From the NCBI GenBank assembly GCA_030704615.1, contig CM060731.1:33542001-33606000 (forward strand): a stretch of DNA of 64,000 nt, in the 5' to 3' direction. Positions 1 through 40,134 of this stretch are shown in pieces. Origin of the DNA: Takakia lepidozioides (Eukaryota; Plantae; Bryophyta). Within the stretch, counting starts at the first letter, position 1. Every line of letters begins with the position of its first letter. The notes beneath the pieces are model-generated. The model searched no databases. It saw only the letters and a list, made by a program, of their open reading frames with translations, and was not told the origin of the DNA. The position numbers and the translations under genes were made by a program.

Positions 1-3000
1 ATACTCTTTCTTCAAGAGTGCCGCAGTGCGCTTGGCTCCGCCGTGGCCCGCAAGCAGGCTATCATGGCATTCTCTCAAGAGGCTATCTCTGATCCCTCCC
101 TTTGGCACATAGAGACGTTTTTGCCTATACCGGAGCAGTCCTTTTTGCAAGTGGAACTGCGATTTAACCCCCATTCTCAAGTCCTGCATCACGCGCTTTG
201 CCAGCTCATCCTTCCGGCAAGCCTTCCGGATCTTCCTTTGGAGCGCCGTCTCGCCCTTGTACACCAACAAGAGCTGCTGCTTTCTACTTAAAGCATCGGC
301 CACCACATTGTCCCGTCCCGGTTTGTACTGGATATCCACGTCGAACACTGCCAAAGTATCTTGCCACCTAAGTTGTTTTGGGGACAACTTGGGCTGCGTG
401 GCAAAATACTTCACCGTGACATTGTCCGTGAACACCTTCACTGGGTTGGAACCAACATAGTGGCGCCAGAGTTCAAGGCAATGCACCACCGCCTTCATCT
501 CTTTTTCGTGCGTCGGCCACCGTCGCTCCACTTCATTCAGTTTCTTACTTTCGTAAGCCACTGGACGTCCATCTTGCATAAGTACACCCCCAATCGCGAA
601 GTCCGATGCATCTGTATGAATCTCAAACGGACGATCGAACTCCGGGATTTTCAAGACTGGAGCTTCCGTCATCCGCTGCTTCAATTCAGCAAAAGCTTGG
701 CCACAAAATGTGTTCCATACCCAGACTTTGGATTTACACAGAAGGTCCGACAGCGGCCCCGCGATCTTGGCGAAATTTCTCACATACTTCCGGTAATAGG
801 AGGCGAGTCCTAGGAAGGATCGCACTCCCGGGACCGAAGTCGGAGGCTCCCAGTCCAAGATCGCCCTCACCTTTCTGTCATCCATTTTGATCCCATCCTG
901 TGTAATCACATGCCCCAGGAACTCCACTTTTGTGACCCCGAATTCGCACTTTGAAGCTTTGGCATACAGCTTCCCGTCCCGCAATTTTTGGAACACCCTT
1001 TTGAGGTGCTCCAGGTGCTCCTCCTTTGTTTTCGAGTACACCAAGATGTCGTCGATGTACACGATCACAAAGTCATCCAACCACTCCTGGAAAAGGCTGT
1101 TCATCAGCGTGCTAAATGTCGCTGGTGCATTGGTGAGCCCAAAAGGCATCACCAAGAACTCATATGAACCATACCTTGTCCTGCACGCGGTCTTCTCCTC
1201 ATCTCCTTCTGCCACCCGAATTTGGTGATAGCCGGAGCGCAAGTCGATCCGGCTGAAATACTTCGCTCCTGCCAACCGATCGAAGAGGTCGTCGATCCTT
1301 GGCAAAGGGTACCGGTTTTTGATAGTCACCTTATTCAAAGCCCTGTAATCGACACACATCCGCAGCGTCCCATCCTTCTTGTCTGCGAATAGCACCGGGG
1401 CTCCGTAAGGTGACTTACTCGGCCGGATGTACCCCTTTGACATTAGATCCTTGAGCTGAGTCTTCAGCTCGACCAACTCTCTGTGGCTCAACCGGTAGGG
1501 CGCCTTGGCAGGCGGTTCCGATCCCGGTATCACCTCAATCTTGTGGTCAACTCCTCTTCGCGGTGGCAAGCCGCTTGGTAAATCCTCCGGCATCACATCC
1601 TGGTATTTCTCCAAAATCCCTTTGATCCAATCTGGGCTCGGCTCCCCATCGCCTTCTCCTTTCACTTCTCTAATGTAAAGCAAAAACTGGGACTCGTGTG
1701 CCTCCTCCACGGCCCACTCCTTTGCTGACAGAAGGTTTATTCGCCCTCCCACGGATTTGGGCGTTTCCGACACTCGTAAAACTTCACCACCATTCCCACA
1801 TGGCAGCGTGACTACTCTCTTGCGGCCATCTATGACCGCTCCGGATTTGCTCAAAAAGGTCATCCCCAAAATGAGATCCACTCCATCGATCTCGCAGATA
1901 GTGAAGTTCTCACGTCCCTCCCAACTCCCCAGTTGAAGAGGAACATCAAACGCCAACCTTGTCGCCAACTGAGGTTCTCCTTTGGCAGAGCGCACCTCAA
2001 TAGAGGCCCCCACGTCACTTGTCGGGAGTCCCAACTTTCGCGCCGCCGCCGGCGTCATGAAGGAGTGCGACGCTCCTGTGTCCACCAACAACGACACGTT
2101 AGTTCCGGATATTATCCCATCCACGAACAATAACTGACTCCCTTTACGCAGGGCGCCAGTTTCCTGATACAACTCACAAGAATAGTTGCCTACCTTGCAA
2201 GTCCTGGCGACTACCGCTTCCACCAAACGACTGATGGTATCTTCCGACAGCTCCGTGGTCGCCCGAGTCATGTTCAATTGCCGGGGCTTCGTGCACTTCT
2301 TGGCCATGTGCCCGGGCTCCCCGCAATTGAAACACACTCCATCAAAGGTCGCCTTCTGTCCGCCATAAGCCGCTCCACCCGCTTTTCCTTTCGAAGCACC
2401 GGGTGCCGCCTTGACGTGTGAAGGCCCTCCCTTCGATTTCCACGTGCCATTTTCGCCGCGTGGCCTATCCCACTTCTTTTCCGGTCGGGAGGAGTCACCT
2501 TCCCGCCGGGTCTTCTTGTGGTTCAGCTCCGTACGGCCTTGTCTCTCACCCTTAGGGACATCCGAGAAACATTCAGCTCTCTCAATTGCCTCGTTCAAAG
2601 TCTTGGGTGGCTTCTCCTCCAACTTCCGCCTAGCCCATGGGGCCAGTCCCGCCACAAAGTTGAAGACCATTTCTGGTTCCGCCATGTCCGCGACTTCGAG
2701 CAACAGCACATTGAAAGCCTGGACATACCCCCGAATGTCATCTGTTTGCTTCAAATTCCTCATCTTGTCCCGGGCAAGCCAGGATGCGTTGAGGGGCACA
2801 AACTGTCTCTTCATCAATTCCTTGAACCCACTCCAGTTCAAGGTTTCCGGGCTTGGGCCTCGGTCGTGAAGGCGTTTCTGCCACCATTGTTGAGCATAGC
2901 CCCTCAAATAGGTGGGAGCCACTTCCACCCGATCCTCGTCACTCAACTTGGCCGCCCGGAAGTACTGCTCTAGCTCCAGGAGCCAGGTGTTGAGTGCCTT

Positions 3001-3249
3001 CCGGTTTCGAACGCCCTCAAAGGTGCCGGGTTCCTTAGGCTTCACCTTAAACTTTGCCTTAGTGGAAGTGGCATTAGCCGCCTTCAACACGTCTTTCAAC
3101 GCCCCGCCAAACTGCGCCAACAACCCTTCCCAAAAGGCTGCTGGCATGGGAGGCATCTCTTGGTTTGTCGGAGCTCTCGAGGATTCCTCGGGCTCCGACT
3201 CCTCGGATTCCTCCCGCTCTTGAGCGGCCTCGTTTTCGGAAACATTCAT
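1..3249 (-). CDS. Gag-Pol polyprotein (3' end outside window)
   Basis: ATG at 3249 (MNVSENEAA); [14 protein letters not shown] knuckle; [10 protein letters not shown] protease; YIDD RT motif in the same frame (1059); TDASDFAIG RNase H; [10 protein letters not shown] start of the integrase zinc finger near base 1. Confidence 0.9.
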
Positions 3250-3395
3250 CGCTTCCTCAAACGGCCGCCTCGGTGACACGTCGCCCCCATCGGGCTCACC
3301 GGGATCATCATCTTTTGGGCCGTTCCGCTTTCGCTTCGGCTTGCCCGACCCCATGATGAGGCCGATCCCAAGGACGATCGCGTACTGAACTCTAA

Positions 3396-3407
3396 GCTCT
3401 GATACCA
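3396..3407 (-). promoter_or_regulatory. Primer binding site, tRNA-iMet
   Basis: Minus-strand TGGTATCAGAGC, 2 nt inside the LTR end. Confidence 0.92.
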
Positions 3408-3409
3408 AA

Positions 3410-4134
3410 TGTCGCGCACCTCACTTCGGTAAACTCCCCTTCAAGTCATAGTTAACCGCTTTGATGCGCGCGCCTGACTCCCAACCTGGCCGCCGGGCCA
3501 ACTTGGAGTTTCGGCTACTCACCGGGACATAACGGTCCCCATTCGCTTCCTCTAAAACCCTCCACCTATTTGGGACTAGGAGAATTCCCTTTGGTAGATG
3601 GCAGTCCGGAACAGCTCCCCACTCTTTGGTCGCTTTCCGGCTCGCACGATTACTCACTAGTTTTTGGTCACCAACGGGCTTGCACCGTTCTCGGGGTTAC
3701 TACTCCCTTATATATACTTCTGTAGCTGTCCGCGGGGGTTTCATAACCAGCCATGCCATTTTATGGCGAACCACCACGAAAACCCTCGACTCCCGGTGGT
3801 GAGTCGCGGTGAGTCTTGGCCCACTCACCGCGGCCCCAATGGACCATGATGAGTCCCAAGACTCCCCACGACTCCCACCTCGAGGTCTCCACCCCATGGT
3901 GAGTCCTATGCCACCCCCACTAAGTCCCACTAAGCTACCACCACCCCTTGTGGAGCCACCTCCACCGCAACCCGGTGTGCGGGGCTCCACCTAGTGAGCG
4001 CCTCCGCCTCTTTGAGTGCCTTGGGCACTCAAGGGTGCTTCAGCCCCCCATACCTATCGTCGCCGCTGCCCCCACCACAGGGGCAGCCCCTCATGTGTCC
4101 CGACCCCCTGCCCTCAAGGCAAAGGGCCGCGACA
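3410..4134 (-). repeat. 5' LTR (725 bp)
   Basis: Termini TGTCGCG...CGCGACA are inverted repeats; abuts the PBS; partner LTR is outside the window. Confidence 0.85.
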
Positions 4135-7100
4135 ACATTCTACTAGAGTGGAGCTGCAGAGAAAATTGAAACTCATGATCAAAGCACAAGCAGAAGGGAG
4201 ACGGCATACCAGCTGACCAGGGAAACCCCTTTCACAAGGTAGAGGCTGTTCACACAATTCCATGTGCGCAAAACTTCAAACCCTGAAGACTTGAGGTATG
4301 ATGCCAATGCCCGACGACTATCATTGTCACATGACTGAAAAAGCAGAAGTGTCCCTGCATCAGAGAGGAAGTTGTTGCAGAACCCGAACACCCAACTCCA
4401 GTAGTTGTCCTCGAATTTGTTCCAGCCTGGCGTCTTGCCCTTTGGAAGAACTTCTGGCACAGCCTGGCCATCCGGGATGTCGAGAATGACAATATCGGCC
4501 GCATAAGTTTTCTGCACACCGCACACAAAGGTGGGACCTGTGCTCACCTGCAACAGACATGTTTTTTATAAGAGCGATGGCAAGATTGTTTTCAAAGAAC
4601 GAGACTGAAATACTTCCAACGAAACTTTCAGAGAAAAAGGAAAGAAACTGGAATTCTCACTAGATTGAGGAATGAGATTATATTGTCCCAGGTAGGGGAT
4701 GGCACCCCAGTGTATCCTCTCATCGAAAGCCAACCCTCATTAACAATTTTCATCTCTCCTGCGGAATCAGAACGGGAAGGGTGTGGCTTGGCATCGAACA
4801 CGCACTGAAGAGTGCGGGTATATCTTCCAGCAGTAAAGTCCTGCCCACTCTCCATCTCCTTTTCATTCTCCTTCCCCTTGTCCTTTTCCTTCTCTTTGGA
4901 CTTGTCTTTGTCCTTTGGCTTTGCTGGTGAGATGGCTATGACATCAACAGCCTTGTCTTTTGGTTTGCGGCCCGCCTTCTTTCCCTTCTGCGGCGTTCCC
5001 TGAGCATCAGGCTCCTTGGCAGCCAACGTTGCTATGTTTCGTTGATACTCTTCGTCAGTCAAAGGCGCCAGCGTCTCAGCGTTATTGTTCAAGTATTTCA
5101 TATGTTGTTCTTGAAAGGTCGTGTGCTCCGGTGGGCAGTCAAGGTACCAGCCACAGTCTCTGAAGTGAGAAGGACTCCAGTCCTTCAATATCCCTGCAGT
5201 ATACATGGTTGGATCGTTTGCAGGGTCCGACCACATGTCAAGATAGTCGGAAATTCCGCTCAGGTGATTTCCTTCCATAAGCACATATTTCGTGTACCTG
5301 AAAAAATGAGATAAATCCCAACCCACAAAAGCGCTCAGTGAGTAAGATGCAAGTAGAACAGAATGAAAAAAACATAGATTGAAATGGCTCTGAGAACTGC
5401 TCCAAGGACCTTTCAGGACCACACTATTGCTCCAGATATGAATGTCGTCAACGTCATTCAGAACATTCCATTCAATGATACTGTAAATACACCCCAATCC
5501 AGGTGAATGCAAATTATCGTTTAGGAATGACACAGACATAGAAGTCAATGTCGTCAACGACATTCACTAATGAAGCCAAATTATTACTTAAATGAAGCAA
5601 AATCACAGGATGAAAAGCAAAAAATCGAGTAAGGAACCCACCAGGAAAACTCAATGCACATTCATAACGAACATATCACTGAGGACCTCACAACATCACT
5701 GTATGTGAATGGCGTCAACGCCATTCACAAAAATACCAAAAAGAAACCAATTGCTTAGCTCCCAATCCATGTAAATTCAATTTGTCGCTGTTGAATAATA
5801 CAGACACAGTAGTGAATGTCGTCAACGACATTCACTTTGGATTTCTCATAACAGAGCTTATCAAGCCTCTAGATTCCTCGCAAGAGGCAAAAACAATGCA
5901 GAACAACTGAATGTCTGCATTGACATTCAGCAAAATGAAGTGAGGAACCCTCACTGTAACCTCTATGGACATTACAAAAATTTACATAACTCTGAGGACC
6001 TCTCAACAACTCCGTAGGTGAATGCGTCAACGCCATTCAAGGACATTATCAATTCTAATCAGGGACAATATAATTGCACCCTTAGATCCTAACCAGGTGA
6101 ATTCATATACTCGCTTAAGAATGACTCAGACAAAGAAGTGAATGTCGTCAACGACATACAATCTGGATCTAAGATTGCAATCCATATGAAGCCACATTTT
6201 TCCCAAAAAAACAGTAGAGTTTCAAGTATGACATTGCACCTGTACACAACTCGCATCATGGCCCACTCTCCTCCAACCTGACTGTCAAAGTCGTTGGACC
6301 GTAAAATGTTACCATCTTTGGAGAACTCCCGGAAAAAACAGTATCTCCAAGTGAGACCTCTCCACTTTCTTATGTATGCCTCCAATGACATTTGGGGAGG
6401 GGAAACAATCGAAATGTTCAGGTCCTTCAAAGTCTGATCCAGCACAATGACGGCGCGCTTTTCGAGCTGCAAATAGTATATTTGTCAGAATTGCAAAAGA
6501 GATAGTCATCACATACTTGAAGAGAAGAAAACAGCATGTTCGAATACACACCTGACTCCAAAATGTAGCCTTGTGGAGCCAGTTATCAAACACCAAATCA
6601 CTGATTCCTTCCACCTTTGTGCCAGGCTGTATGGTGCTCTTTGGGAACTGATTCAAGTCCTTTATTGTTTGATCTGAGTTCCATATCTCCAGCCACCTTA
6701 TTTTTGTTTGTGGGTCGACCATCGATATGGCCAGCCGGTGCAATTTCTCCTGCTGCATCTCCGGATGCACATGCTTGTCATAGTGTGTTTTGATCTGCTG
6801 AAGGAACTCAGGACCAAGTCCAGGATCTACTATTCTAAGCTGCTTTCCGAAGGCTGACATCAATTTGGTTCTTCGCATTTCAAACTCCTTCTTTATTGCA
6901 GCTTCCACACCCTTTGATGTCCTTAGTTCTTCTGGTGTAGTGCGGTAATATTCGGATTTTCCCTTCTCAGCTGCCTCTGCCAGTTCTTGCTGCATTCATT
7001 CAAGTAGTGATTAGCTCCGAAGGGACTACAAACATGTATTCGAAAAGTAAACAGAGTACAGACTCGGGCTTACCGCATACATGTACTCCAGAAACGCCTC

Positions 7101-8899
7101 TCGTGTCAAAGAATACCAAGTGCCTGCAGCTCTTCCTGTTTCGCACTTCTTGATGATATTGGGTGGTAGTACTGTCCGAAAATCATCCAGCTTCATCAGA
7201 CCAATCCTCTGAATTCGGAATAGTGTGTGAACCAAGCTTGTTGTCACATGCGATTTCTCTGTCGATCTGCAAAAACATTGGAAACATTGCATTCCTTAAC
7301 ACTGTTTTTTGAGAATTAATAAGACACTACAGAGGGAATGAAATCTCCTGGATGACTTACTTGTTCACGTCGTGCATAGCTGTAAGAAGCCTAGCGATGT
7401 CGTTTCCAGGATCCAAAACCATTGCCTCCACAGCAACATGCTTGTCTTTGTCTTTCGAATGGTGTTTCTGAATGTATCCCATCCATGCCAGCAATCGGTG
7501 GTTGCCGTCCCAGACGTAGAACATGTGGTTGCAGAATTGCTGGGTGTTCTTTCCCATCATGAGGCCCAACTCGAACTCCTCATTGGCATCTTTCCAGCAC
7601 TCATCCCAGTTATCACTGATCTCTGGAGACACTAATGTGCTTTTCCCATTTATATCCGTCAGTGACACATAAAAAACTTGTGCACCAAGTCTATATCCAT
7701 GCACAAAATCACTCTCCAATTTTGTTATGTCATGGGAAAGAGGTGGACGCACAACAGGCATTGATATCATCCGGCACAGAGGTATGTCCAGACGCCCTCC
7801 AGATACGAGCATGTCCCTTATAACCTCCTGAGAGTTTACCTTCTGGAATGACATGAGTTCTTTCACCTTGTCAAGGTAGTGCACTTCGGATTCATCTGCT
7901 TCATCTGTATTCTCTGAGCTTTTTGCGGACTCGTCCCCATCTCCAGATCCTTTCCCCTCTGATCCTGTAGGCTTCGACCTCACAGTTTTCTGCACGATGC
8001 CATTCAGTTCTGACTGAGTGATTTGCAAATAGTGAATGGCGGTAACGACCATCACTCTGTCTCAAAGAAACTCACCATGAATGGTGTGACAAAATTCAGC
8101 ACAATCTACACAAGCAAAGCTGAGACTGCCGTATTCAAAACAAAAGCGAGAGCGATAGCGAACGGCGTTAACGACAATCACAACAGATAACGACCTGCCG
8201 GATCGGTGTTGTGTAATGACATACATGTGCAACTGATTGGCGGCAACGACATTCAGTGTAGTTTAGGGCGGATAGTAAGTGCCGACTCTCTCTTCAAACA
8301 CATAGGTACATAAATCTCATGAGGAGAATCGAATGGCGTTAACGACGCTCGCAATTCAGTAGTTCCTGCTAAAGAAGGGAAGAGGAAGGACTCCTTGAAA
8401 GGCAATCAGACAGACTGTATGATCTGAACACCAGTGAATGACTGTACCGATAGTCACCAACTCATTGTGCTGAAAACCCTTTGCAGAGGAGTAGAAAGCA
8501 AATCACTTTGTGATTGTCGGTAGCGACAATCCCTGTCTGGGACATTCCACTCAATCTCTACGCATATCTTCAACAATGAAATGTAAGTTAGATAAAACTT
8601 ACTGGCACCTTCTTAGGTTTTGAAATTTGATCCCCTTCTGCAGCTTTCCTCTTCCCTCTCACATCTGCTGGAATTTCTGTCTGCGCTAGGGTTTCTTGAC
8701 CTTCTCCCGGTTCGGCGTTCCGCGTGCTTCCACCTTCTTCAGTGTCCCTGCGAATCATCTCTGCCTCCACAGGCTGGCGCACTCTTATCGCCAACTGTGT
8801 CACAGCCGCTGCCTCAGTCTCCGTCTGCTCTTGTGAATCAGTCTCCGCGTTCACCTGCTGCCTTGGCCCTGTGTTCTCCAACAAACGACGCCTCGTCAT
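4135..8899 (-). CDS. Multi-exon gene: ParB/Srx-like domain + N6/N4 DNA methyltransferase-like domain, interrupted by the gypsy at 4134
   Basis: Phase-consistent GT-AG exons 8899-8603, 7989-7361, 7266-7074, 6989-6552, 6466-6240, 5297-4661, 4547-~4210, ~4153-4135; FYVWDGNHRLLAW (GxxRxxA); ADIVILDIPDG...WVFGFCNNFLSDAGTLLLF resembles beta-class MTase motifs IV-VI. Confidence 0.7.
5438..6161. repeat. Array of seven ~24-bp palindromes (GTGAATGTCGT-CA-ACGACATTCAC) in intron 5298-6239, embedded in a diverged ~300-bp triplicated unit
   Basis: Copies start at 5438, 5544, 5705, 5812, 5907, 6018, 6138. Confidence 0.9.
8032..8533. repeat. Second array of six more-diverged copies of the same 24-bp palindrome in intron 7990-8602
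   Basis: Copies start at 8032, 8158, 8233, 8329, 8434, 8510; spacers look unrelated to each other. Confidence 0.8.
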
Positions 8900-9753
8900 T
8901 TTCTCTCTTGCTCTGCGTCTCTCTCTAAGGGAAGTAAAATAAAGAGACTTTCTTCTCTTTCGTATTCTAGAAGGAACCCTCTCCAGCTTGACTACCACTC
9001 TCCCTCTAAGCGCGAAAAGTAGAAAAACGCAGTGACTCCCGATTTCTTGCGGGATTGCCTGCGTTCTTGCGTGTCTCTAGAAGCATCGGATTCCCTCCCG
9101 CGTGACCGTTACACATAGTCGTTCCCTTATTAGTGCACATGCCAGCAATTGGTGTACAGCTGTTCGTATTCAGTTATGGATGTCTGACTTGTGTCGCCCA
9201 AAAAAAACGGCGTGTTCTTTATTAGAACGGTTTCAATATTTAAAAATAACAGCGAATCCAGAAATCTTGGCGCACAGTCTTAGACAAATATATGTAAATG
9301 AACGAGAGTTTGATGACAAATTTTGGGATATTATACACGGTCATCCTTGTTAGCCAACCCCACGTTCGTTTCACATTTTGAACTTTCCAGGTGCGCATGA
9401 TCATTGGTAGTAGTATAAAGATACATTTACTTAATCTGCAATCCCATTCTCAGATCCTGTGGCATGCTTCCAGGAAGTCGGCTTTGTTGTTGGGTTTATT
9501 GATGAGGTTCTGGTTAACGGTTTTACAGCTGCCGACACTGCACCTAGGGATACTCTGACCACTGGGCCCACAAGAAAAGTAATTAAAATGGACGGCTGCA
9601 TATCTGGAAAGAATAACATAATATGCACAGTCGTTATCTGAGCTTCCTCCGCCATATTCTCTGCTCATTCTTCAACTGTGTTCTGGAGACAGCAGTAAAC
9701 CGATTTACACTAGATCTGCGATAGCAAGGTACAAACGTACGCGAGGAAGGAAG

Positions 9754-12700
9754 ATGGCTTCCTCTGAAGCGGAGTTCTTCTCTAACGACAAACCAGTGCC
9801 GTTCTCCCAGGAAGTCCTTGACAATGGATTTGCAATTGTTCTGGAACATGTCTTGGCTACCCGTTTTCAGCTGCAGAATGGCTCCATCTTTTTGGAGAAA
9901 GAGGTGTACGATCTTAAAGGGAAGTTGGTGAAATATTCTTTCCAAAACCGTGATGAGACGGCTCATATCAGCCAGTGGAGAGTGCGTCTTGGTCGATACA
10001 GAGTACTTGAAGAGCCTCGGCGAAAGTCCCTTGGATCATATGTGACGCCCGGGACTGCTGCTTCGGTCGTTGAAGACAAGAGGGAGGTGGTGGTGAAAAA
10101 AGAACAGACGTCCTCCACTCCAATCGTTGAGCTTTCGGATTCTTCCGATGATGACATAAGTGAAATTCCAAATCCAGTCCTTCCTACTGTGGTTGGAGAA
10201 GCTGATGAAGAAGAGATTTGTAGTGTCATTCCAAAATTGCGGGCGATGGGAGGAATGGCTGGATTCAAAAGTGAGTTGCGGGGAATTGATTGGGAATCTT
10301 TGAAGCAGGTGCCTGTGAAGTTCTTGCCGGAGACTTTTGATGGCGATATCCTATTCGAGCTGCCTCCTCCTCCGCGAGTTGGAGGTGTAACAATCATGAT
10401 GCATGGAATGGACAAGAAACACGACGGGCACCCGTGGTGCAGAACAAAAACATCCAATATTCAGAATGATGACAAGCTTGTTTTCAGGAGGACAGTTTGC
10501 AATGGACACCTTAGGTGTGATAATTTGAATTGCAGACACTTTCTTCAGTCTGGGGTTCATAATCAAAGCGAATGGGAGGGTCTGGCGGAAAATCCATTTC
10601 AGCCTGGGACTGCCCCTCCACCGGCAAACACTTTCGTCTGCAAATTATGCAAACTTGTGCCATCCTGTTTGGCGCTCTGCGGAGCAAGAATGTACTATGT
10701 TGTCCACCGTTTGAATACAATGACGAGAGCTTGTGTGCATTTTGGATTCCATAACCATCCTGTCTCGAAGGGGGATTACAGGGAGAGTGTTGAGACAGTA
10801 TCGAGGTTGATCAAACAGGAGTTCGGGAGAAACCCATCCGCAACAACATCTGCAATTGCTCTTGGCGCAAGCAAGTCCTTATTGGAAAGCCATATTTTGA
10901 GTGAAGGAGATTCTGTGGGGACTAAACTTGACGGTGCAGCATTGGACCTGGTCATGGATTATTTCTCCACTTTAAGTTCACCTAACATTCGGCATCAGAT
11001 CAATGCATTGAGAATGGGCTCTGGGATCAGAGGCTACATAGACAATATTTTGGAATTGAAACGAGTGAGCAAGTACGATTACATCCAGGACAATGTATTC
11101 CCAGGTCAAGGTGCCATCAAAGTTTTTCTTTTCAAAATGTCGACTGTTGGGGAGGGCATTGGGGTTAGCCTCGTGAAGCGGATGCAGAAGACTGGGGACT
11201 TGCAGAACTGTTTTCTTATGTTTGATCATGTGAAACGAGTGAAGGATTGGACGACAATGACTTGTCATGTCTACGATCCAGTGTACCAACGAGTTATGAC
11301 AATTGCAGTTTGTGGCATGCAATCCGAGGATACGGAATCCCAGAAGCTCATGTGGAATTCCCTGATACGTGTCATGGGCTGCCATGGGCTGCCATCTCCA
11401 AATTTCGCAGGTTTCATGGCGGATAGTGCTCAAGCAAATTTCAATGCTGTTCGTATTGTCTTCGGATCGGGCGACCCAAAAGTGCCTATGCCAGGAAGAG
11501 AGCGTATATGTCTATTCCATTGGACACAATCTCTAGAAAAACATACAAAGTCGGACATCAAACCAGAGATGCAGACTCAGCACCGTAAATTGTGCAAAGA
11601 GTACAAAGATGCTAGAACAATGAAGGAGGCGGACACTTTGTTCCAGACAATTCGTGCATGGTGGTTCTCTTCTGGAGCTGCATCACTTGAGAGTATGAGA
11701 GCATTGGAAGATTGGCTGGCGTTTTGGCACTTCTGGTATAGACAGTGGGGAGCAGCCATGACAATGGTACGAGGCTTTTATTTCATGCTTTATTCATACA
11801 TTTGCTTTCCATATTTTTGACTCATTGCTTTCTTTATGTTGTTTTCTGTGCACTGTTCTGAAGTGTGGTTATCCTCTTTGCAGAACATGTCCATTGAGGA
11901 AATGGCGGACATGTCATCTTGCAATTTGGCAGAAACTGTGCACAACGCATGGTTGCAGCAGTCTGGGAAACGAGGTCGGGATTTGTATGTGGCAACAACA
12001 GATGATTTGATACGTGCCTTGCAACAACAAACCCGATACCGTGATTTCTTACGAGGTGGGGTTGGTGGCAAGGGTCCGGACAAATGGGAGTTGATGTTGC
12101 GTGCTGAAAACAGATCTGGATCCAATCAAGATAGCACGGGCGGTGAGCATGTATGCCCAGGGAACGCCACTTGTTTCTAGAGTTCCACATCTTGAAGGGG
12201 AGGAGAGATTCGGCTCCTGTAAGAGGAAATTGAACACTCCACCTGGTTCGGATTCAGATTCCCACAGGGCAGACCGTGATAACTTCTCGAAGCCTCGTGT
12301 TCCCCTGCATGACAGCTCCATGTCCGGAACCTCCATTGTGGAGGAACCTCCAACACAACGGCAAGCTCCAGCATCAAACAGTGCCACTGAAATGGTGCAG
12401 GAGAGAAACAACCCCCTTGATGTGCTTGAGTCCGCATGCCCCGACCACGTTTGGCACATAGAACGCACAAGTGTAGGGTCTCGTGTGAAATGTACAGCGA
12501 TCAGGGCAACTAATTTCGAGAAGTGCACTTCATCTATATCCAGAGGTGGTGCCCGAACTCCTGCTCCGACTTTCACGGGCTTGATGCGTCCATACGGTCA
12601 ACCAGAAGCCAAGAACCACAAGTTCTGGTTCTGCGCAGATGATTGTGCCAGATGTGTGCATGGAACTGTGCATCCTTCCGTAGTGATGAAGCCAACTCCT

Positions 12701-13267
12701 CCAACCGTTTGGCCCGTGAAGGTGGGAACACATCTCAGCTTTCAGGAGATTGAAATGCTGGAGGAGGCAGGTTTTTCCCTTGCGAGACAACCCCAACTCC
12801 ATGCATGTGCTACTACTTCTGCGTCCTCCCGGGTCCCCCCGGCAAATCCTGACTTGTGGCCAACCAAACGAGATGGAAAGCTCGTTCGGCGTTTCCCTCC
12901 AACCGCTGAACACTTTGACAAAGTGGAGTCCGCAAGAATGCTCCAAGCTCGTGTTGGAAGCACCACGGAAGTACCCGATCCAGGATATGGTCGAGTATTC
13001 ACAATCATCACTTCCACATCTGCTGTTCATGACAAGACCTACGACATCACGGTTTCCAATTTCCCCAATTGCACATGTCCTGATTTTGTGAATATGCTAT
13101 CAACCAGTTTGGGCAAGAGAGGTAAATTCATACCCTGCAAACATTTGTATTTCATATTTTTGAGGAGGATGGTTTGCGATCCCAAACGTGACAACTTCAT
13201 TCACCAGGCCACTATGAGTTTCAACGAGGTCAATACTCTTTTGCAGCGGGATACAACACATGGGTAG
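9754..13267 (+). CDS. Mutator-like (MULE) DDE transposase with GCM/WRKY-like zinc domain and C-terminal SWIM; one frameshift near 12105
   Basis: FLMFDHVKR...FMADSAQA...CLFHW...CNLAETVH (D-D-CxxH-E); SWIM CTCPDF...CKH; N-terminal WCRTKTSN...CNGHLRC..C...CKLC...HNHP; intron 11767-11883. Confidence 0.85.
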
Positions 13268-14272
13268 CATGAACTATGTAATGTGGTATGTGGATGACCA
13301 TGATTTGAAATGTGTAATTCACATCAATTCGTCGGCTGTGCAATGATATGGCCTCCAACTATACGGAGTCAGCTCTGAGTGACAACTTTTAGGTAGTGCA
13401 CATTTGTCATTGCACCGTTCGAAGTCTACATGTCTTGCTGTCGCTATGCACTACAATCATCTTTTGAAGATGATCCTAACTCTCATTGTTATTTGAGGAG
13501 GGAGGAAGGTATTCCCGTGGCAGCCTTTATGGCGCACACTTTGTGAGGATATTTTGTCGTCCTCGTAATTGTAAAAGTGAAACAAGCATTTGTAATTGCA
13601 CAATGTTGGATGCTGCAATTGTAGGCCTCAATGCTCGTCTTGATTCTATTTAGGCAAGATTCCCTGCATTAATTCCACGGTCATAGGACCATCCACGGTT
13701 ATAGGCGGCGCATGTTAATGGTGACGTGGCAGATGACGGACAGTGCCATGTCATCATTTACCGCCACATCAGCATGCTGACATGACGCTCACGCCACGTC
13801 AGCTGGCGTGAGCGTACGCTCGCGCGCTCATGCGCAACGCTCACGCCATTGCGTCGTTGCTCTGTGATAGTCTCGTAAATGAATCGAAATTTATATGGAA
13901 GTCTAATCACCCGCATTTTCTGTAGATCCATGAGTCCAATATGGAGGAAGTGACACATACTAGAACAAACGACACACAACAGCGTACAGTGAAGAAACAA
14001 TACGACTTGAGAGTGAGGATATCATCGCCCAAGGTGGCATCTCCAGAAACCGCGGGCAATCGCGCGAGGTTACTTATACGAGGGGTCGACAAAAGCATAC
14101 CGGACGGCGAAAGACCCGTCGCCCGGAGGAATTGGCGGCGAAACCTCATCCGGCTCTGAGCAAGTGCCGCCAAAGCTGGTACTTCATTCTCCGCCTTCTG
14201 TTTTTTTTTTCTGCATTCCATTGCGAAAAACGTCCAATGAATTAATAATTATTTCCTAATGGGCAGGATGAT

Positions 14273-15094
14273 ATGATCTATCCACCGCACGATTATTCCC
14301 AAGCTGTCAATCCCGCGGATTTCTTTGCTCTTCCAATGGGTCCAAATGGATGTCAGCCCGGATATTATGTCCTGGTTCTGGATGTCGGGTTCCTATGTGA
14401 GGTCTACCTCCAGAATGGGCCAAAAACCCCTCCCGCAACGCAGCCTTATATCTCCGCTGGAAGATTTAAGTTAGCAATGCAACATGAGGTGGGAGACTTC
14501 CTCAAATGGGTCGTCAAGAAGTTTTGGGTCATCTTATGGAACACTGGCAGAGAAGAGACTGTCGTGGATTTCAAATCAGCCTTGTTCAGGAGGAACGCCC
14601 ACAAGGTCATGCATTACAGTTCCGACCAATGTGTGGAACATAGACTTACTTTCAACACATATTGGCATACGCTACCTAAGGCCCCAATCTACTTCAAACG
14701 ACTTTACGATTTGTTCGTAGACCCCGACTCTAAAGCCTACAGGTCTAACACCCTGCTTATCGACGTCATTGGGAACATGTACAAGTCTTTCATCAATTCT
14801 CTGAGCTTGGTCATCTTCCTACCTAAATACAAAGCACTTGTAGATCCATACAAGGATGATTTTCTGATGGGTCATCTAAAGCCCCCCCTGGAGAAGTTGA
14901 GGCATTCAAAAATGGACATTTGGGCCTTCAATGAGTAGAACCTTTTTGGAATACCTAAGGATATTTACTTTCAGGATGCTAGAGTGAAATTCATTAATCA
15001 CTGGGACTTTCCATGGCCTAAGAACAAGGAGAAATGGGATGTACATCTAAAGTACCTAAAGGCCCTGGAAGTGGAACATGGGATATTAAAGTGA
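14273..15094 (+). pseudogene. FCP1/NIF-like HAD phosphatase domain 1 (degenerate; in-frame TAG at 14936)
   Basis: VLVLDVGFLC, FLKWVVKKFWVILWNTG, FKRLYDLF, SNTLLID; frame continues past TAG to TGA at 15092. Confidence 0.65.
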
Positions 15095-15200
15095 CTAATT
15101 TTGAGAATGTATTGGGATTCTGAGGTCATTGTTTTCCTTATCTGTTCATGTCATTCTTCTTTTCTTGATTTACTTAAGTGTCTTTATCACTCGTTCACAG

Positions 15201-15920
15201 ATCCGACAGCCTGGATCTCCACCTTTGAGGGGACCTCGCTTGATAATTTTTGACGTTAATGGAGTGCTATGCAAAATAACGAAGTGCCAGAGCCCAGGAC
15301 CTGCTCCACGCTTTTCGGAATCTGACTACAACATTCCTACTATTGTTGGATATCAGCAAATCTTTAGAAGGAAGATGTACCGGGAAGTTTGGCAAGAGTT
15401 ACACAAGCACTTCATTTTAGGTATCTGGAGCTGCATGGTGCTTAAAAACTTAAATGCCGTTCTGGATTTGCTCCTACGTGGTCTTCCACGGCCAGCGTTC
15501 ATCATATCGCAGGAGGATTGTATCATTTGCCCAAGCAATCTGCATCCAAATTACCGAACGGGACAAGATCAACCTCCTGTGTTCTTGAAACCACTCCTTA
15601 AAGTATGGCAAAGTTCTGAAGGTTTTTACAATCAGAGTAACACCCTGCTGATTGATGATACGGCTTTGAAGTGTTTGATGAACCCTCCTGAATCTTGTCT
15701 TCTTCTCAAGACTTTTGAGATAATCGACGTCAACGATTTCTTCCTTCTCAAACTTAGAGATTTCTTGCTTAGCTTCTTGAAATTTGAGAACGTCTCAAGC
15801 TTCTTGAAAGCAAGGAGAATAAGATTTCCACCTTTAAAAGTTAACGATCCACAGTTCAAGCCTCTTCTTGATTATATTGATAATTCACAATATGGTGATT
15901 ACCGAGTAAATGATACGTAA
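15201..15920 (+). CDS. FCP1/NIF-like HAD phosphatase domain 2 (exon after AG acceptor at 15200)
   Basis: LIIFDVNGVLC, LGIWSCM, SQEDC, FLKPLLKVW, SNTLLIDDTALKCLMNP. Confidence 0.75.
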   Translation: MRQPGSPPLRGPRLIIFDVNGVLCKITKCQSPGPAPRFSESDYNIPTIVGYQQIFRRKMYREVWQELHKHFILGIWSCMVLKNLNAVLDLLLRGLPRPAFIISQEDCIICPSNLHPNYRTGQDQPPVFLKPLLKVWQSSEGFYNQSNTLLIDDTALKCLMNPPESCLLLKTFEIIDVNDFFLLKLRDFLLSFLKFENVSSFLKARRIRFPPLKVNDPQFKPLLDYIDNSQYGDYRVNDT

Positions 15921-38508: not shown

Positions 38509-40134
38509 ATGGATGACACTGGAGCTCGGTGGCATGGTGAGACGGACGAGGAGATGGTGCCCGGATGGCATGCATCTGCATTTCTGTGTATCTTGGCAGC
38601 GGAAGGCCAGGTTGGACCTGCAACATGGATGACTATAGATCAAGTGTCTGAGGACCCTGAGGCCAGCAATGAGCAAGGTGGCGCCAAAGATATACATGAG
38701 GATTCAGTTGTGTTGGACTACCTCCGCACTGGAGATACTGCAGCCACTGTGACTGCCAAAGAGAGGGATCGGATCCTACAACGAGCCAAGAGGTTCAAGT
38801 GGGAGGGGACACACCTGCTCCGAGTGTGGGAGGATGGTCGAGTGAGGATTGTGCCTCACCCAACACAGCGGGCACGGTTAGTGCGGCATGCCCATGAGGA
38901 GTTGGGGCATTTTGGGGTGCGACGCACTAATAGTCTACTGCTGGGGCAGTATTGGTGGCGTGGTATGCACACAGAGGTGCAACAATTTGTGGCTAGGTGC
39001 ATGGTGTGTGACAGGGTGCGTGCTTCATTCAACGCCCCTACTCCACAATTGCACCCTCTTCCGATCATGGGATTGGGCTACAGGTGGAGTCTTGACTTCG
39101 CAGGGCCATTGCCACTGACCATGCGCCACAACAAGTACGTGTTAGTGATGGTGGAGCACTTCTCCAAGTGGATTGAGTTGGTTCCATTACCTGATAAGGC
39201 TAGTGAGGGAGCTGCGTATGCATTCTTGGATTATGTGCTTAGCCGATTCGGTGCTCCAGCTGAGGTACTCACGGACCAAGGGAGAGAGTTCTTGGGGGAG
39301 TTTCAGGCTTTGTGTGACAAGACCTTGATAGACCACCGCACCACTTCTCGGGATCATCCTGAGGCCGATGGCTTGGCAGAGAGAGTTGTTCAGACAGTAA
39401 AGAGGGGTTTGCGCAAGTATGGCTTGCAGAAGGGACACCTAGGAGATTGGGACCTTCAGTTACCCTGGTTAGCCATGGGCTACAGGTTCAGCAAGCAAGC
39501 ATCACTTGCCTCCTTCTCACCATACTTTATTCTCTTCGGCCGAGAGCCGGATTTGCCTACATCCATTCGCAGAGAAGCTGCTACAATTCTTGACCTTGAC
39601 GATCCGGACGTGTGGGCACGTGCATGTGAGCAGCGTGCAGAGTTGTTCAAGAAAGTCATGCCCATGGCTTTCGAGAACCTTGCCATTGCACAACACCGTG
39701 ATACGTTGAGGTATGCTACCATACGTGGTGGGGGCTATTGTCCTGGGGTTCGGAGATTCAACCCTGGTGACTATGTCTATCTGCAGCAGACTGCTCCTAC
39801 GACCTTGGATGTGACTGCAGGACGTGTTATTTTGAGGGTTCGAGAGGTCTTGCCCTCAGGCGTCTTGGTCTTGGAGGGCCGGGATGGCATAACTTGGAAG
39901 GACCATGTGCGTAATTGTGCACCATGTCACCTTTCGAATGTCGATGGTAGGATTGACCCAAACCTGGCAGTGGTATCTGCAGGTTTGAGGTACATGTTGT
40001 GTGGGTCTGCTAGAGGGGCAGCCACCATGCTGGTGTGTGATCGATGCTCTAGAGGTTGGCATATGGGATGCTTGACTCCACCTCTTGAGATGGTTCCGGA
40101 TGGGAATTGGTTATGTCCACAATGCATTGGATAG
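38509..40134 (+). CDS. DDE integrase with C-terminal PHD finger
   Basis: HEELGH...CMVC, WSLDFAGP, LTDQG, GLAERVVQT; YMLC...CDRCSRGWHMGCLTPPL...NWLCPQC (first Cys is Tyr). Confidence 0.92.
   Translation: MDDTGARWHGETDEEMVPGWHASAFLCILAAEGQVGPATWMTIDQVSEDPEASNEQGGAKDIHEDSVVLDYLRTGDTAATVTAKERDRILQRAKRFKWEGTHLLRVWEDGRVRIVPHPTQRARLVRHAHEELGHFGVRRTNSLLLGQYWWRGMHTEVQQFVARCMVCDRVRASFNAPTPQLHPLPIMGLGYRWSLDFAGPLPLTMRHNKYVLVMVEHFSKWIELVPLPDKASEGAAYAFLDYVLSRFGAPAEVLTDQGREFLGEFQALCDKTLIDHRTTSRDHPEADGLAERVVQTVKRGLRKYGLQKGHLGDWDLQLPWLAMGYRFSKQASLASFSPYFILFGREPDLPTSIRREAATILDLDDPDVWARACEQRAELFKKVMPMAFENLAIAQHRDTLRYATIRGGGYCPGVRRFNPGDYVYLQQTAPTTLDVTAGRVILRVREVLPSGVLVLEGRDGITWKDHVRNCAPCHLSNVDGRIDPNLAVVSAGLRYMLCGSARGAATMLVCDRCSRGWHMGCLTPPLEMVPDGNWLCPQCIG

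Follow-up and report, generated by a model that had tools for sequence, protein, structure and literature searches.

Accessory genes are rare in plant DNA transposons and their function is mostly unknown, VANC being an example of an anti-silencing factor. The closest described systems to the locus reported here are the multi-gene Mutator-like elements (MULEs) MuDR (mudrA/mudrB), VANDAL/Hiun (vanA/vanB/vanC) and Mutyl (mutB), with which it and its relatives share a MULE-type spacing of the DDE residues, a zinc-binding N-terminus and a SWIM finger in the transposase, as well as terminal inverted repeats (TIRs) of tens of base pairs, a 9-bp target-site duplication (TSD) and a second, element-specific accessory open reading frame (ORF) (PMC6446971). 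The locus lies in a 64,000-nucleotide stretch of the genome of Takakia lepidozioides (assembly GCA_030704615.1, contig CM060731.1, positions 33,542,001 to 33,606,000), hereafter called the window. It comprises a transposase gene and a divergently oriented partner gene, and we consider it probable that it represents the transposase-proximal part of a large, decayed, two-gene DNA transposon of the Mutator superfamily in a land plant, in which the partner would be an accessory factor acting on DNA. Unlike in the multi-gene elements named above, the accessory protein is a fusion of a ParB/Srx-like and an amino-methyltransferase (MTase)-like part, the two genes point away from each other, the size of the element is unusually great (13-24 kb) and the transposase has diverged beyond the reach of the Pfam MULE models. 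MURB of MuDR and VANC of VANDAL may be comparable to the partner in their proposed role, but not in sequence. A review of MULE diversity that gives the accessory ORFs includes no methylase or ParB (PMC6446971), and no description of a ParB or MTase partner in a MULE was found in the literature, Repbase not being covered.

Two other groups of proteins and elements invite comparison. Fusions of ParB with an adenine methylase occur in bacteria and phages, for example Bce_0392 of Bacillus cereus, and one of them is reported to have nicking activity (cited in PMC5512222). These prokaryotic and phage fusions with N6/N4 methylases have the same order as the plant protein, with the ParB/Srx part N-terminal and a beta-class amino-MTase C-terminal, and sit on a mobile element. 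The plant protein differs from them by its long middle region, its introns and a motif IV that reads D-x-P-E/D rather than DPPY.

Some eukaryotic transposable elements, like the present one, stably carry a domain of the DNA-modification type. TET/JBP proteins are found with KDZ transposons. DNA methyltransferases (DNMTs) are carried by retrotransposons of dinoflagellates and charophytes (PMC5890265), and DIRS1 contains an inactive MTase (PMC4738411). In contrast to these elements, the one described here combines an amino-MTase-like with a ParB/Srx domain, is a MULE-like DNA transposon and has land plants as hosts. A survey of eukaryotic adenine methylases reports few amino-methyltransferases in land plants and contains nothing like the partner protein (PMC4738411).

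Results

Two divergent genes

On the minus strand of the window, a chain of ORFs with changing frame runs from 8055 to 4180; on the plus strand, the transposase gene is represented by ORFs at 9754-11820, 11836-12180 and 12101-13267. The features assigned to the two genes are as follows.

9754-11766, plus strand: transposase exon 1, a 688-aa ORF with homologs, comprising the Cys/His-rich N-terminus and most of the DDE core
11224-11226, 11422-11424 and from 11509, plus strand: first catalytic Asp (D1), second catalytic Asp (D2) and CxxH motif, all in exon 1
11767-11883, plus strand: transposase intron 1, 117 nt, GT..AG, phase 0, skipped in the contiguous homolog P0108
11884-12120, plus strand: transposase exon 2 with the catalytic Glu (NLAE, 11932-11934); the frame is lost at 12119/12120
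12119-13267, plus strand: C-terminal part of the transposase in a shifted frame, from alignment to P0108, L002 and L003
13070-13144, plus strand: SWIM finger CTC…CKH (Pfam SWIM, E=0.006)
8588-8998, minus strand: candidate 5' exon of the partner, a charged ORF resembling a nuclear localisation signal and ending at a GTAAGT donor, proposed from sequence alone
7360-8055, minus strand: partner exon 1, ParB/Srx-like, with DGNHR at 7495-7509 (ORF, homologs, AlphaFold2 and Foldseek)
7041-7268, minus strand: partner exon 2, after an intron of about 91 nt, from tblastn of longer homologs; contiguous with exon 1 in L001
6471-6995, minus strand: partner middle region, no known domain, from homology to P0145 (Ceratodon), L002, L003 and L006
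4937-5347, minus strand: second exon of the partner middle region, from tblastn of P0138, P0139, P0140 and P0142
4212-4547, minus strand: first half of the beta-class amino-MTase-like domain of the partner, motifs IV to VIII (hidden Markov model of the MTase alignment, E=5e-34)

The minus-strand gene had been described in an earlier note on this DNA as intron-containing, and two protein strings had been quoted from it. Both were found on the minus strand, DGNHRLLAW at 7495-7509 (ORF 7357-8055) and DIVILDIPDG…FLSDAGTLLLF in ORF 4179-4553. Homologs align to window positions 8016-7336, 7268-7041, 6995-6471, 5347-4937 and 4604-4212 in changing frames. Since overlapping homologs span these five stretches, they belong to one split gene, as the note had proposed. 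The exon 1 ORF (7357-8055) encodes 232 aa and has 52 database homologs, with E values down to 1e-67; none of these contains a Pfam domain and the sole named source is the liverwort Riccia sorocarpa. Many of them end exactly at the exon 1 boundary (…AMHDINK), like the window exon, and the longer ones resume in the window at 7268-7041 and then at 6995-6471. At the other end of the gene, exon 4212-4547 aligns to L001, L002, L003 and P0138, and a profile of this last exon with its counterparts from related loci retrieved 385 proteins (E<=0.001) from a representative library of 1.84 billion proteins. Longer matches, such as P0138 and, from the moss Ceratodon purpureus, P0145, join the middle region to the C-terminal domain. 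Judged by these comparisons, the numbers of homologs (52 for exon 1, 385 methylase-like, 72 for the transposase) are far beyond chance. From the exon lengths, we estimate the accessory protein at roughly 900-1000 aa.

The conserved ORFs of the partner and of the transposase start at 8055 and 9754, respectively, and point away from each other across 1.7 kb. The gap of about 850 bp given earlier would hold only if ORF 8588-8998 were the 5' exon of the partner; homology of this ORF was sought and none was found. In the Ceratodon locus L015 (CM026436.1), a ParB/Srx exon lies at 8196-9236 and the annotated gene model (KAG0624017.1) begins downstream of it, at 10001, and thus does not include the ParB/Srx domain.

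The transposase

The transposase has 72 homologs (E down to 1e-242), without Pfam domains, and one of them, P0108 (1050 aa), covers all three ORFs of the window. The conserved blocks read MFDHVKRV…, …GFMADSAQANW…, ERTCLFHW, …WLAFWHFRYRQWG and …CNLAETVHN, and are followed by a C-terminal SWIM finger, CxC…CxH, which Pfam matched weakly in the window (E=0.006) and at 7e-5 in relatives. Cys and His columns of the N-terminal region are nearly invariant. In contiguous members the catalytic residues are spaced D-66-D, D2-29/31-H and W-18-E, with 125-127 residues from D2 to E; in the window they correspond to D491, D557, H589, W665 and a Glu at spliced position 688. The equivalent residues of Muta1, defined experimentally, are D214, D283, H307, W401 and E419 (PMC5225508). 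Among 80 members searched against Pfam, 2 weakly touched the bacterial model Transposase_mut (PF00872; best E=0.034) and no other transposase family was touched. A PDB profile search with the transposase alignment returned nothing.

We weighed the possibility that the enzyme belongs to another superfamily with a CxxH motif, such as hAT, P or Kolobok, or to an undescribed one. It would agree with the absence of significant matches to the Pfam MULE, FAR1 and DBD_Tnp_Mut models in the 80 members and with the outcome of a profile search for annotated MULEs, which yielded only closer relatives, though fern names were among them; CxxH and W motifs are moreover common to hAT (PMC5225508). Yet, the distance from D2 to E (about 125-131 residues) is near the 136 of Muta1, the C-terminal SWIM finger, the 9-bp TSD and the TIRs of 64-75 bp described below also speak against this assignment, and Transposase_mut is the only transposase family touched in Pfam. 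In hAT transposases, a large insertion domain separates D2 from E. We therefore hold a non-Mutator transposase to be quite improbable. The Muta1-like motif spacing, the weak match to Transposase_mut and the element termini, taken together, support the assignment of the plus-strand gene as a Mutator-like transposase, in agreement with the earlier note.

Termini of the element and conservation of the gene pair

The two genes stand head-to-head in six lineages: the window, L001/L002, L003, L009, L010 and Ceratodon purpureus (L015), the proteins of which are only 27-59% identical; the pairing thus occurs in mosses and in further contigs of plant origin. L001 and L002 are two copies of one family (92% identical), the right end of which was fixed by comparing L013 with L014. 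The L002 copy measures 23,855 bp and has both genes inside imperfect TIRs, which are about 75 bp long and contain many TGAGC repeats. It is flanked at both ends by a perfect 9-bp duplication, GAGAAAGGT; a shared 9-mer was obtained in 140 of 20000 shuffles. In L003, both genes fall between 64-bp TIRs of about 90% identity, which lie near 3458 and 16513 and delimit an element of 13 kb. The earlier note had made its reading depend on such linkage beyond this copy, and it was observed both in other copies and in other species, with shared termini in L002 and L003. In the window, the corresponding end is represented by the following feature.

13780-13880, no strand: GCTCAC/GCTCATG repeats in a putative terminal region on the transposase side, positioned from the TIRs of L002 and L003 by analogy

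These repeats lie 520-610 bp past the transposase stop, and both their motif and their distance match L002 and L003. By this analogy, 13.78-13.88 kb is the putative, approximate transposase-side end of the element, and the other end is off the window.

The ratio of nonsynonymous to synonymous substitution rates (dN/dS) between L001 and L002 amounted to 0.38 for the ParB exon, 0.29-0.49 for the halves of the MTase-like domain and 0.46 for the transposase. The values being similar, the partner is as constrained as the transposase. Other ORFs in or beside the elements of L007, L008, L009, L013 and L014 showed no informative domains.

These data bear on the idea that the partner is a host gene that was captured, like the passengers of Pack-MULEs, or is simply adjacent as a neighbour of the target site, and that it plays no role for the element. 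MULEs often acquire host genes (PMC6446971), two loci with the transposase (L007 and L008) are without the partner, conifers contain MTase-like proteins with no evident ParB part, and genes of the NIF type recur beside the element, though outside its TIRs. A passenger would, however, not be expected in the same order and orientation in six lineages at 27-59% protein identity, with both genes inside the TIRs of L002 and L003 and a partner dN/dS resembling that of the transposase. Among the loci with enough flank, furthermore, no stand-alone copy outside the element was found, except for the ParB-only gene of Riccia. We regard a passenger origin as highly improbable.

The N-terminal ParB/Srx-like domain

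An AlphaFold2 model of exon 1, built with 34 homologs, was confident over residues 80-232, with a predicted local distance difference test (pLDDT) above 90 in the core. Compared with the PDB by Foldseek, the model gave ParB/Srx-type proteins in 27 of the 30 best matches, including Noc (probability 0.97), sulfiredoxin (Srx), ParB, KorB, PadC and SbnI/serine kinase. The E values were 0.02-0.3 and the template modelling (TM) score against Srx was about 0.5. Against predicted viral structures (BFVD), the matches were mostly phage ParB-like nuclease or partition proteins and DndB-like proteins (E from 0.007, probability up to 1.00). D183, G184, N185, H186 and W191 are invariant in the 34 sequences, as are the columns IPLCR and GY, and conservation reaches at least 90% for R187 and A190. 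The resulting family block, F-x-V-W-D-G-N-H-R-L-x-A-W (VWDGNHRLLAW in the window), fits the GxxRxxA/DGxHR pocket of ParB/Srx proteins.

No sequence profile recognized the domain. Pfam found no match in exon 1 among the window ORFs, and its ParBc model matched 0 of the 34 members; a PDB profile search with the exon 1 alignment gave nothing relevant; and NCBIfam gave nothing significant, TIGR03187 touching one member at E=0.16. Because the structural matches are consistent but have no counterpart in sequence profiles, the ParB/Srx fold predicted for the exon 1 product, and proposed in the earlier note, is well supported, while membership of the ParB/Srx superfamily at the sequence level is unproven.

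The C-terminal methyltransferase-like domain

A single match to the MTase alignment was obtained in the window, which holds only the first half of the domain. The half with motifs X, I and II is absent from it. Motif I, for which the earlier note had suggested a look beyond the insertion, was found in seven homologous loci, L001, L002, L003, L006, L009, L012 and L015. The second half of L002 reads …IVVDITASTGASAQAC…FFGFEAE, and in L003 one ORF of 487 aa runs unbroken from motif IV through motif I (DLVIFDVPEN…DIVLDLTAGTG). Pieces of the second half match the C-terminal end of Pfam N6_N4_Mtase (E 1e-3 to 4e-5, profile positions about 163-218), and the motif I piece of L002 touched the DpnA-type enzyme 5hfj at E=0.007 in a PDB profile search. 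The corresponding search with the alignment of the first half returned nothing, and the window exon had no match in Pfam. In the family as a whole, many members of which are exon fragments, 17 of 149 matched N6_N4_Mtase at E<=0.01, the best at 1.2e-7. P0235 of Cryptomeria reached 31.7 bits for a Pfam cut-off of 26.7, most other members scoring 15-26 bits, and P0255 of Riccia, which UniRef lists as 'DNA methylase N-4/N-6 domain-containing protein', aligns with positions 2-212 of the 221 in the profile.

The AlphaFold2 model of residues 295-585 of the family member P0138 had a pLDDT of 89. It matched CcrM at E=3e-12 in Foldseek, with 189 PDB matches at E<=0.001, and M.BceJIV, M1.HpyAVI, M.MboIIA, M.RsrI, M.PvuII and the bdelloid N4-cytosine methylase N4CMT, all with a probability of 1.00. 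On the strength of this modelling, a beta-class N6/N4 amino-MTase fold that begins with motif IV and has motif I at its end is established for the family. This Rossmann-type arrangement, which the earlier note had anticipated, is thus borne out in contiguous members and homologous loci. The plant family shares with CcrM, M.BceJIV, M1.HpyAVI, M.RsrI, M.PvuII and N4CMT the fold and the order IV…VIII, variable region, X, I, II. In contrast to these enzymes, it has lost the catalytic aromatic residue, its motif I glycines are partly replaced and the Pfam cut-off is attained by some of its members only.

Motif IV of the window is DIPD (4470-4481, minus strand), which had been taken for a possible alteration of this copy. 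Across 108 members, its first position is D in 84 (78%), its second is hydrophobic or Q rather than the canonical P, and its third is P in 95 (88%). At the fourth, aromatic position, E or D is found in 81 members (E 53, D 28, S 9, K 7, H 5, Y 1, F 1). The aromatic residue is therefore missing in 106 of the 108 and the canonical (D/N/S)PP(Y/F/W/H) is not matched. The surroundings are also conserved, as [IVL][IL]A-D-x-P-E-G-L-P-V-P. By this alignment, the non-canonical motif IV is a trait of the whole family and not a defect of the window copy, contrary to what the note had supposed. The consensus of motif I is D-[LIV]-[ST]-A-[SG]-T-G-[AT]-S, with a conserved acidic residue after it, compared with a canonical D-P-F-x-G-S-G-T-T. 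Its D is present in 42 of 49 members and its last G in 31 of 49, the first G being mostly S. The conservation of motif I and of the surroundings of motif IV indicates that the fold, and probably the cofactor pocket, are under selection and that the canonical catalytic loop is not. Binding of S-adenosylmethionine (SAM) by the partner is thus plausible, since motif I is for the most part retained, as is the acidic residue behind it, and canonical methylation of N6-adenine or N4-cytosine is unlikely, since D-x-P-(E/D) replaces (D/N/S)PP(Y/F/W) across the family.

Would the partner nonetheless be an active DNA methyltransferase, which would place N6-methyladenine (6mA), N4-methylcytosine (4mC) or a mark on another amino target in the DNA of the element, for example in the palindromes described below, for self-identification or against silencing by 5-methylcytosine (5mC) and RNA-directed DNA methylation (RdDM)? 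The Rossmann fold is intact and confidently modelled in P0138, the D..A.TG of motif I and the Glu after it are conserved, motif IV retains its D in 78% and its P in 88% of the members, the gene is under constraint, and acquired MTases are used by other eukaryotic mobile elements or hosts (PMC5890265, PMC8885841). These arguments are opposed by the replacement of the motif IV aromatic residue by E or D and by the usual Ser in place of the first Gly of the G-x-G of motif I. On balance, we consider that such an activity, which is the main rival to our reading, is doubtful.

Palindrome arrays

Eleven copies of a palindrome (consensus GAATGKCGTYAACGACATTC) were found in two clusters, and none elsewhere in the 64 kb.

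5434-6160, no strand: cluster of 20-22-bp palindromes (GAATGTCGTCAACGACATTC) in a partner intron; 0 expected by chance
8033-8537, no strand: further cluster of this palindrome, with 5 degenerate copies, located at the partner 5' end and between the genes

The half-site YAACGAC is enriched in the element, with 13 of the 17 occurrences of the window, one of them at the putative terminus (13852). The palindromes may be binding sites for a protein. Tandem arrays with palindromes of another sequence also occur in related elements: in L003 (11410-13105), a 117-bp unit containing the perfect palindrome GTGTCTCGGATCCGAGACAC is repeated 9 times in an intron of the partner gene, and in L007 (6381-8208), a 182-bp unit is repeated 10 times upstream of the transposase. 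We rejected the palindromes as sites conserved across elements; the sequences differ between loci and no shared motif could be defined.

In a more far-reaching interpretation, the partner would be an active, element-encoded factor that modifies DNA or clamps it under the control of nucleoside triphosphates (NTPs), recognizing the palindrome arrays of the element as parS-like sites and thereby marking or compacting the transposon. We judge this decidedly unlikely. If it were true, a land-plant lineage of MULEs would possess self-recognition or anti-silencing like that of bacteria or phages, and the D-x-P-E loop might perform a novel catalytic chemistry.

Distribution and origin

In the moss Ceratodon, the middle region and the MTase-like domain form one protein, and its locus also contains the ParB exon and the transposase. 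In the liverwort Riccia, the ParB-like and MTase-like parts are separate proteins; in ferns (Adiantum) the transposase was found, and in conifers (Cryptomeria P0235, Taxus P0272) the MTase-like domain only. Motif IV of the two conifer proteins reads NVPS and their motif I is good. These proteins may be truncated models or domesticated derivatives.

The earlier note had called the partner prokaryote-derived, a description that is unproven. No close relative of the partner was found in a collection of prokaryotic genomes or in a viral search, which gave no viral relatives of the ParB alignment. The sole match in the prokaryotic collection was a 4.7-kb contig (L012, CADCWO010000058.1) of a metagenome-assembled genome named 'uncultured Synechococcales cyanobacterium'. 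It carries an intron-containing partner gene with the same exons and introns as the plant copies and is therefore almost certainly a mis-binned plant contig. A bacterial or phage origin of the partner is plausible by analogy, from its domain architecture alone.

State of the window copy and neighbouring sequence

Three lesions affect the two genes in the window. The transposase frame breaks at 12119/12120, where residue 804 of L003 falls in frame 1 and residue 805 in frame 2, overlapping by 2 nt, and L002 is in a single frame. The other two concern the partner.

4179-4181, minus strand: in-frame TGA in the MTase-like domain, at an Arg of P0138 and L003 (alignment by eye)
1-4135, minus strand: long terminal repeat (LTR) retroelement that truncates the partner gene; tblastx match of 283-1563 to the Ty3/gypsy pol at 37.4-38.5 kb

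The retroelement severs the partner gene at about 4135 and continues to the left beyond the window; homology to the reverse transcriptase/RNaseH part of the Ty3/gypsy element at 37.4-38.5 kb was found for its pol region (283-1563). Because of the transposase frameshift, the stop codon in the partner and the cut by the retroelement, the window copy, as read from its frames, is non-functional in both genes and is a relic.

The window is plant DNA, with a leucine-rich repeat (LRR) receptor kinase gene that contains a plant LRRNT_2 domain at 20.7-25.1 kb; Ty3/gypsy elements and elements resembling long interspersed nuclear elements (LINEs) are also present. A gene for an LRR receptor kinase is also present in the Ceratodon locus L015, about 4 kb downstream. 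Beyond the transposase-side end of the element, the window contains two tandem NIF/CTD-phosphatase-like paralogs on the plus strand (14273-14938 and 15129-15920). The unrelated locus L003 likewise has such a gene (L003:2131-3003) just outside its transposase-side end. In all of them, the catalytic DxDx is altered to D-x-N-G (FDVNGVL, LDLNGVL). As a third gene of the element, this gene was rejected in L003, where it is about 450 bp outside the TIR, and by analogy the paralogs of the window are probably not element genes either. Their recurrence beside the element may reflect a preference for certain targets, chance or an association that escaped recognition. Farther along, an integrase ORF of the Ty3/gypsy type at 38509-40131 ends with a PHD finger; in chromoviruses, a chromodomain usually occupies the position at the end of the integrase. 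Between 46000 and 54000, a strong negative GC skew (-0.4 to -0.57) coincides with a LINE-like ORF (Exo_endo_phos) and the plus-strand ORFs that follow it.

Discussion

The locus probably derives from an element encoding a DDE transposase, with a Cys/His-rich N-terminus, a D-D-CxxH-W-E core and a C-terminal SWIM finger, and a divergent accessory protein composed of an N-terminal ParB/Srx fold with its DGNHR pocket, a middle region devoid of known domains and a C-terminal beta-class amino-MTase fold. These folds and motifs, as well as the linkage, the termini and the selective constraint, are shown by the comparisons above. The accessory protein presumably acts on DNA for the element. By analogy with the bacterial ParB-methylase fusions, the ParB/Srx module might supply NTP-dependent binding or nicking of DNA, and the methylase-like module might bind DNA by flipping bases. 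We would expect a change of substrate or chemistry, or else binding of DNA without catalysis that aids transposition or shields the element from silencing. Most likely, the partner serves as an accessory factor that binds DNA and flips bases, its methyl transfer being altered or lost, and that aids transposition or counters silencing. The suggestion of the earlier note that it may mark, protect or organise its own DNA is pure inference.

Several observations weigh against the interpretation of the locus as a two-gene Mutator-like element with a partner of this type. As to the transposase, PF10551 is to be added to the models without a match in the 80 members, a profile link to eukaryotic MULEs was not obtained, and the TIRs of L003 are without a recognizable target duplication. 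As to the gene pair, no partner was detectable within 10 kb of the transposases of L007 and L008, and the 20-kb Riccia locus L004 has a ParB-like gene with neither an MTase part nor a transposase. The proteins of Cryptomeria japonica (P0235) and Taxus chinensis (P0272), of 400-456 aa, have the MTase-like domain behind a low-complexity N-terminus, in which a ParB-like sequence was not apparent by eye, no scan with a ParB profile having been made. As to the domains, the ParB/Srx part is without a match in Pfam, NCBIfam or PDB profiles and its Foldseek E values are weak (0.007-0.1), and the MTase fold was modelled on the homolog P0138, the window sequence comprising only the first half.

The element described here adds a new type of accessory gene to those of the Mutator-like elements, and it joins the short list of eukaryotic transposons with domains of the DNA-modification type. 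In this Mutator-like lineage, the accessory gene resembles those of phages or plasmids and is deeply conserved. It accounts for a set of proteins designated 'hypothetical' or 'DNA methylase N-4/N-6 domain' in plant annotations, and its conserved, non-canonical loop makes it a candidate for a new mechanism of interaction between transposon and host, or for a new use of the amino-MTase fold.

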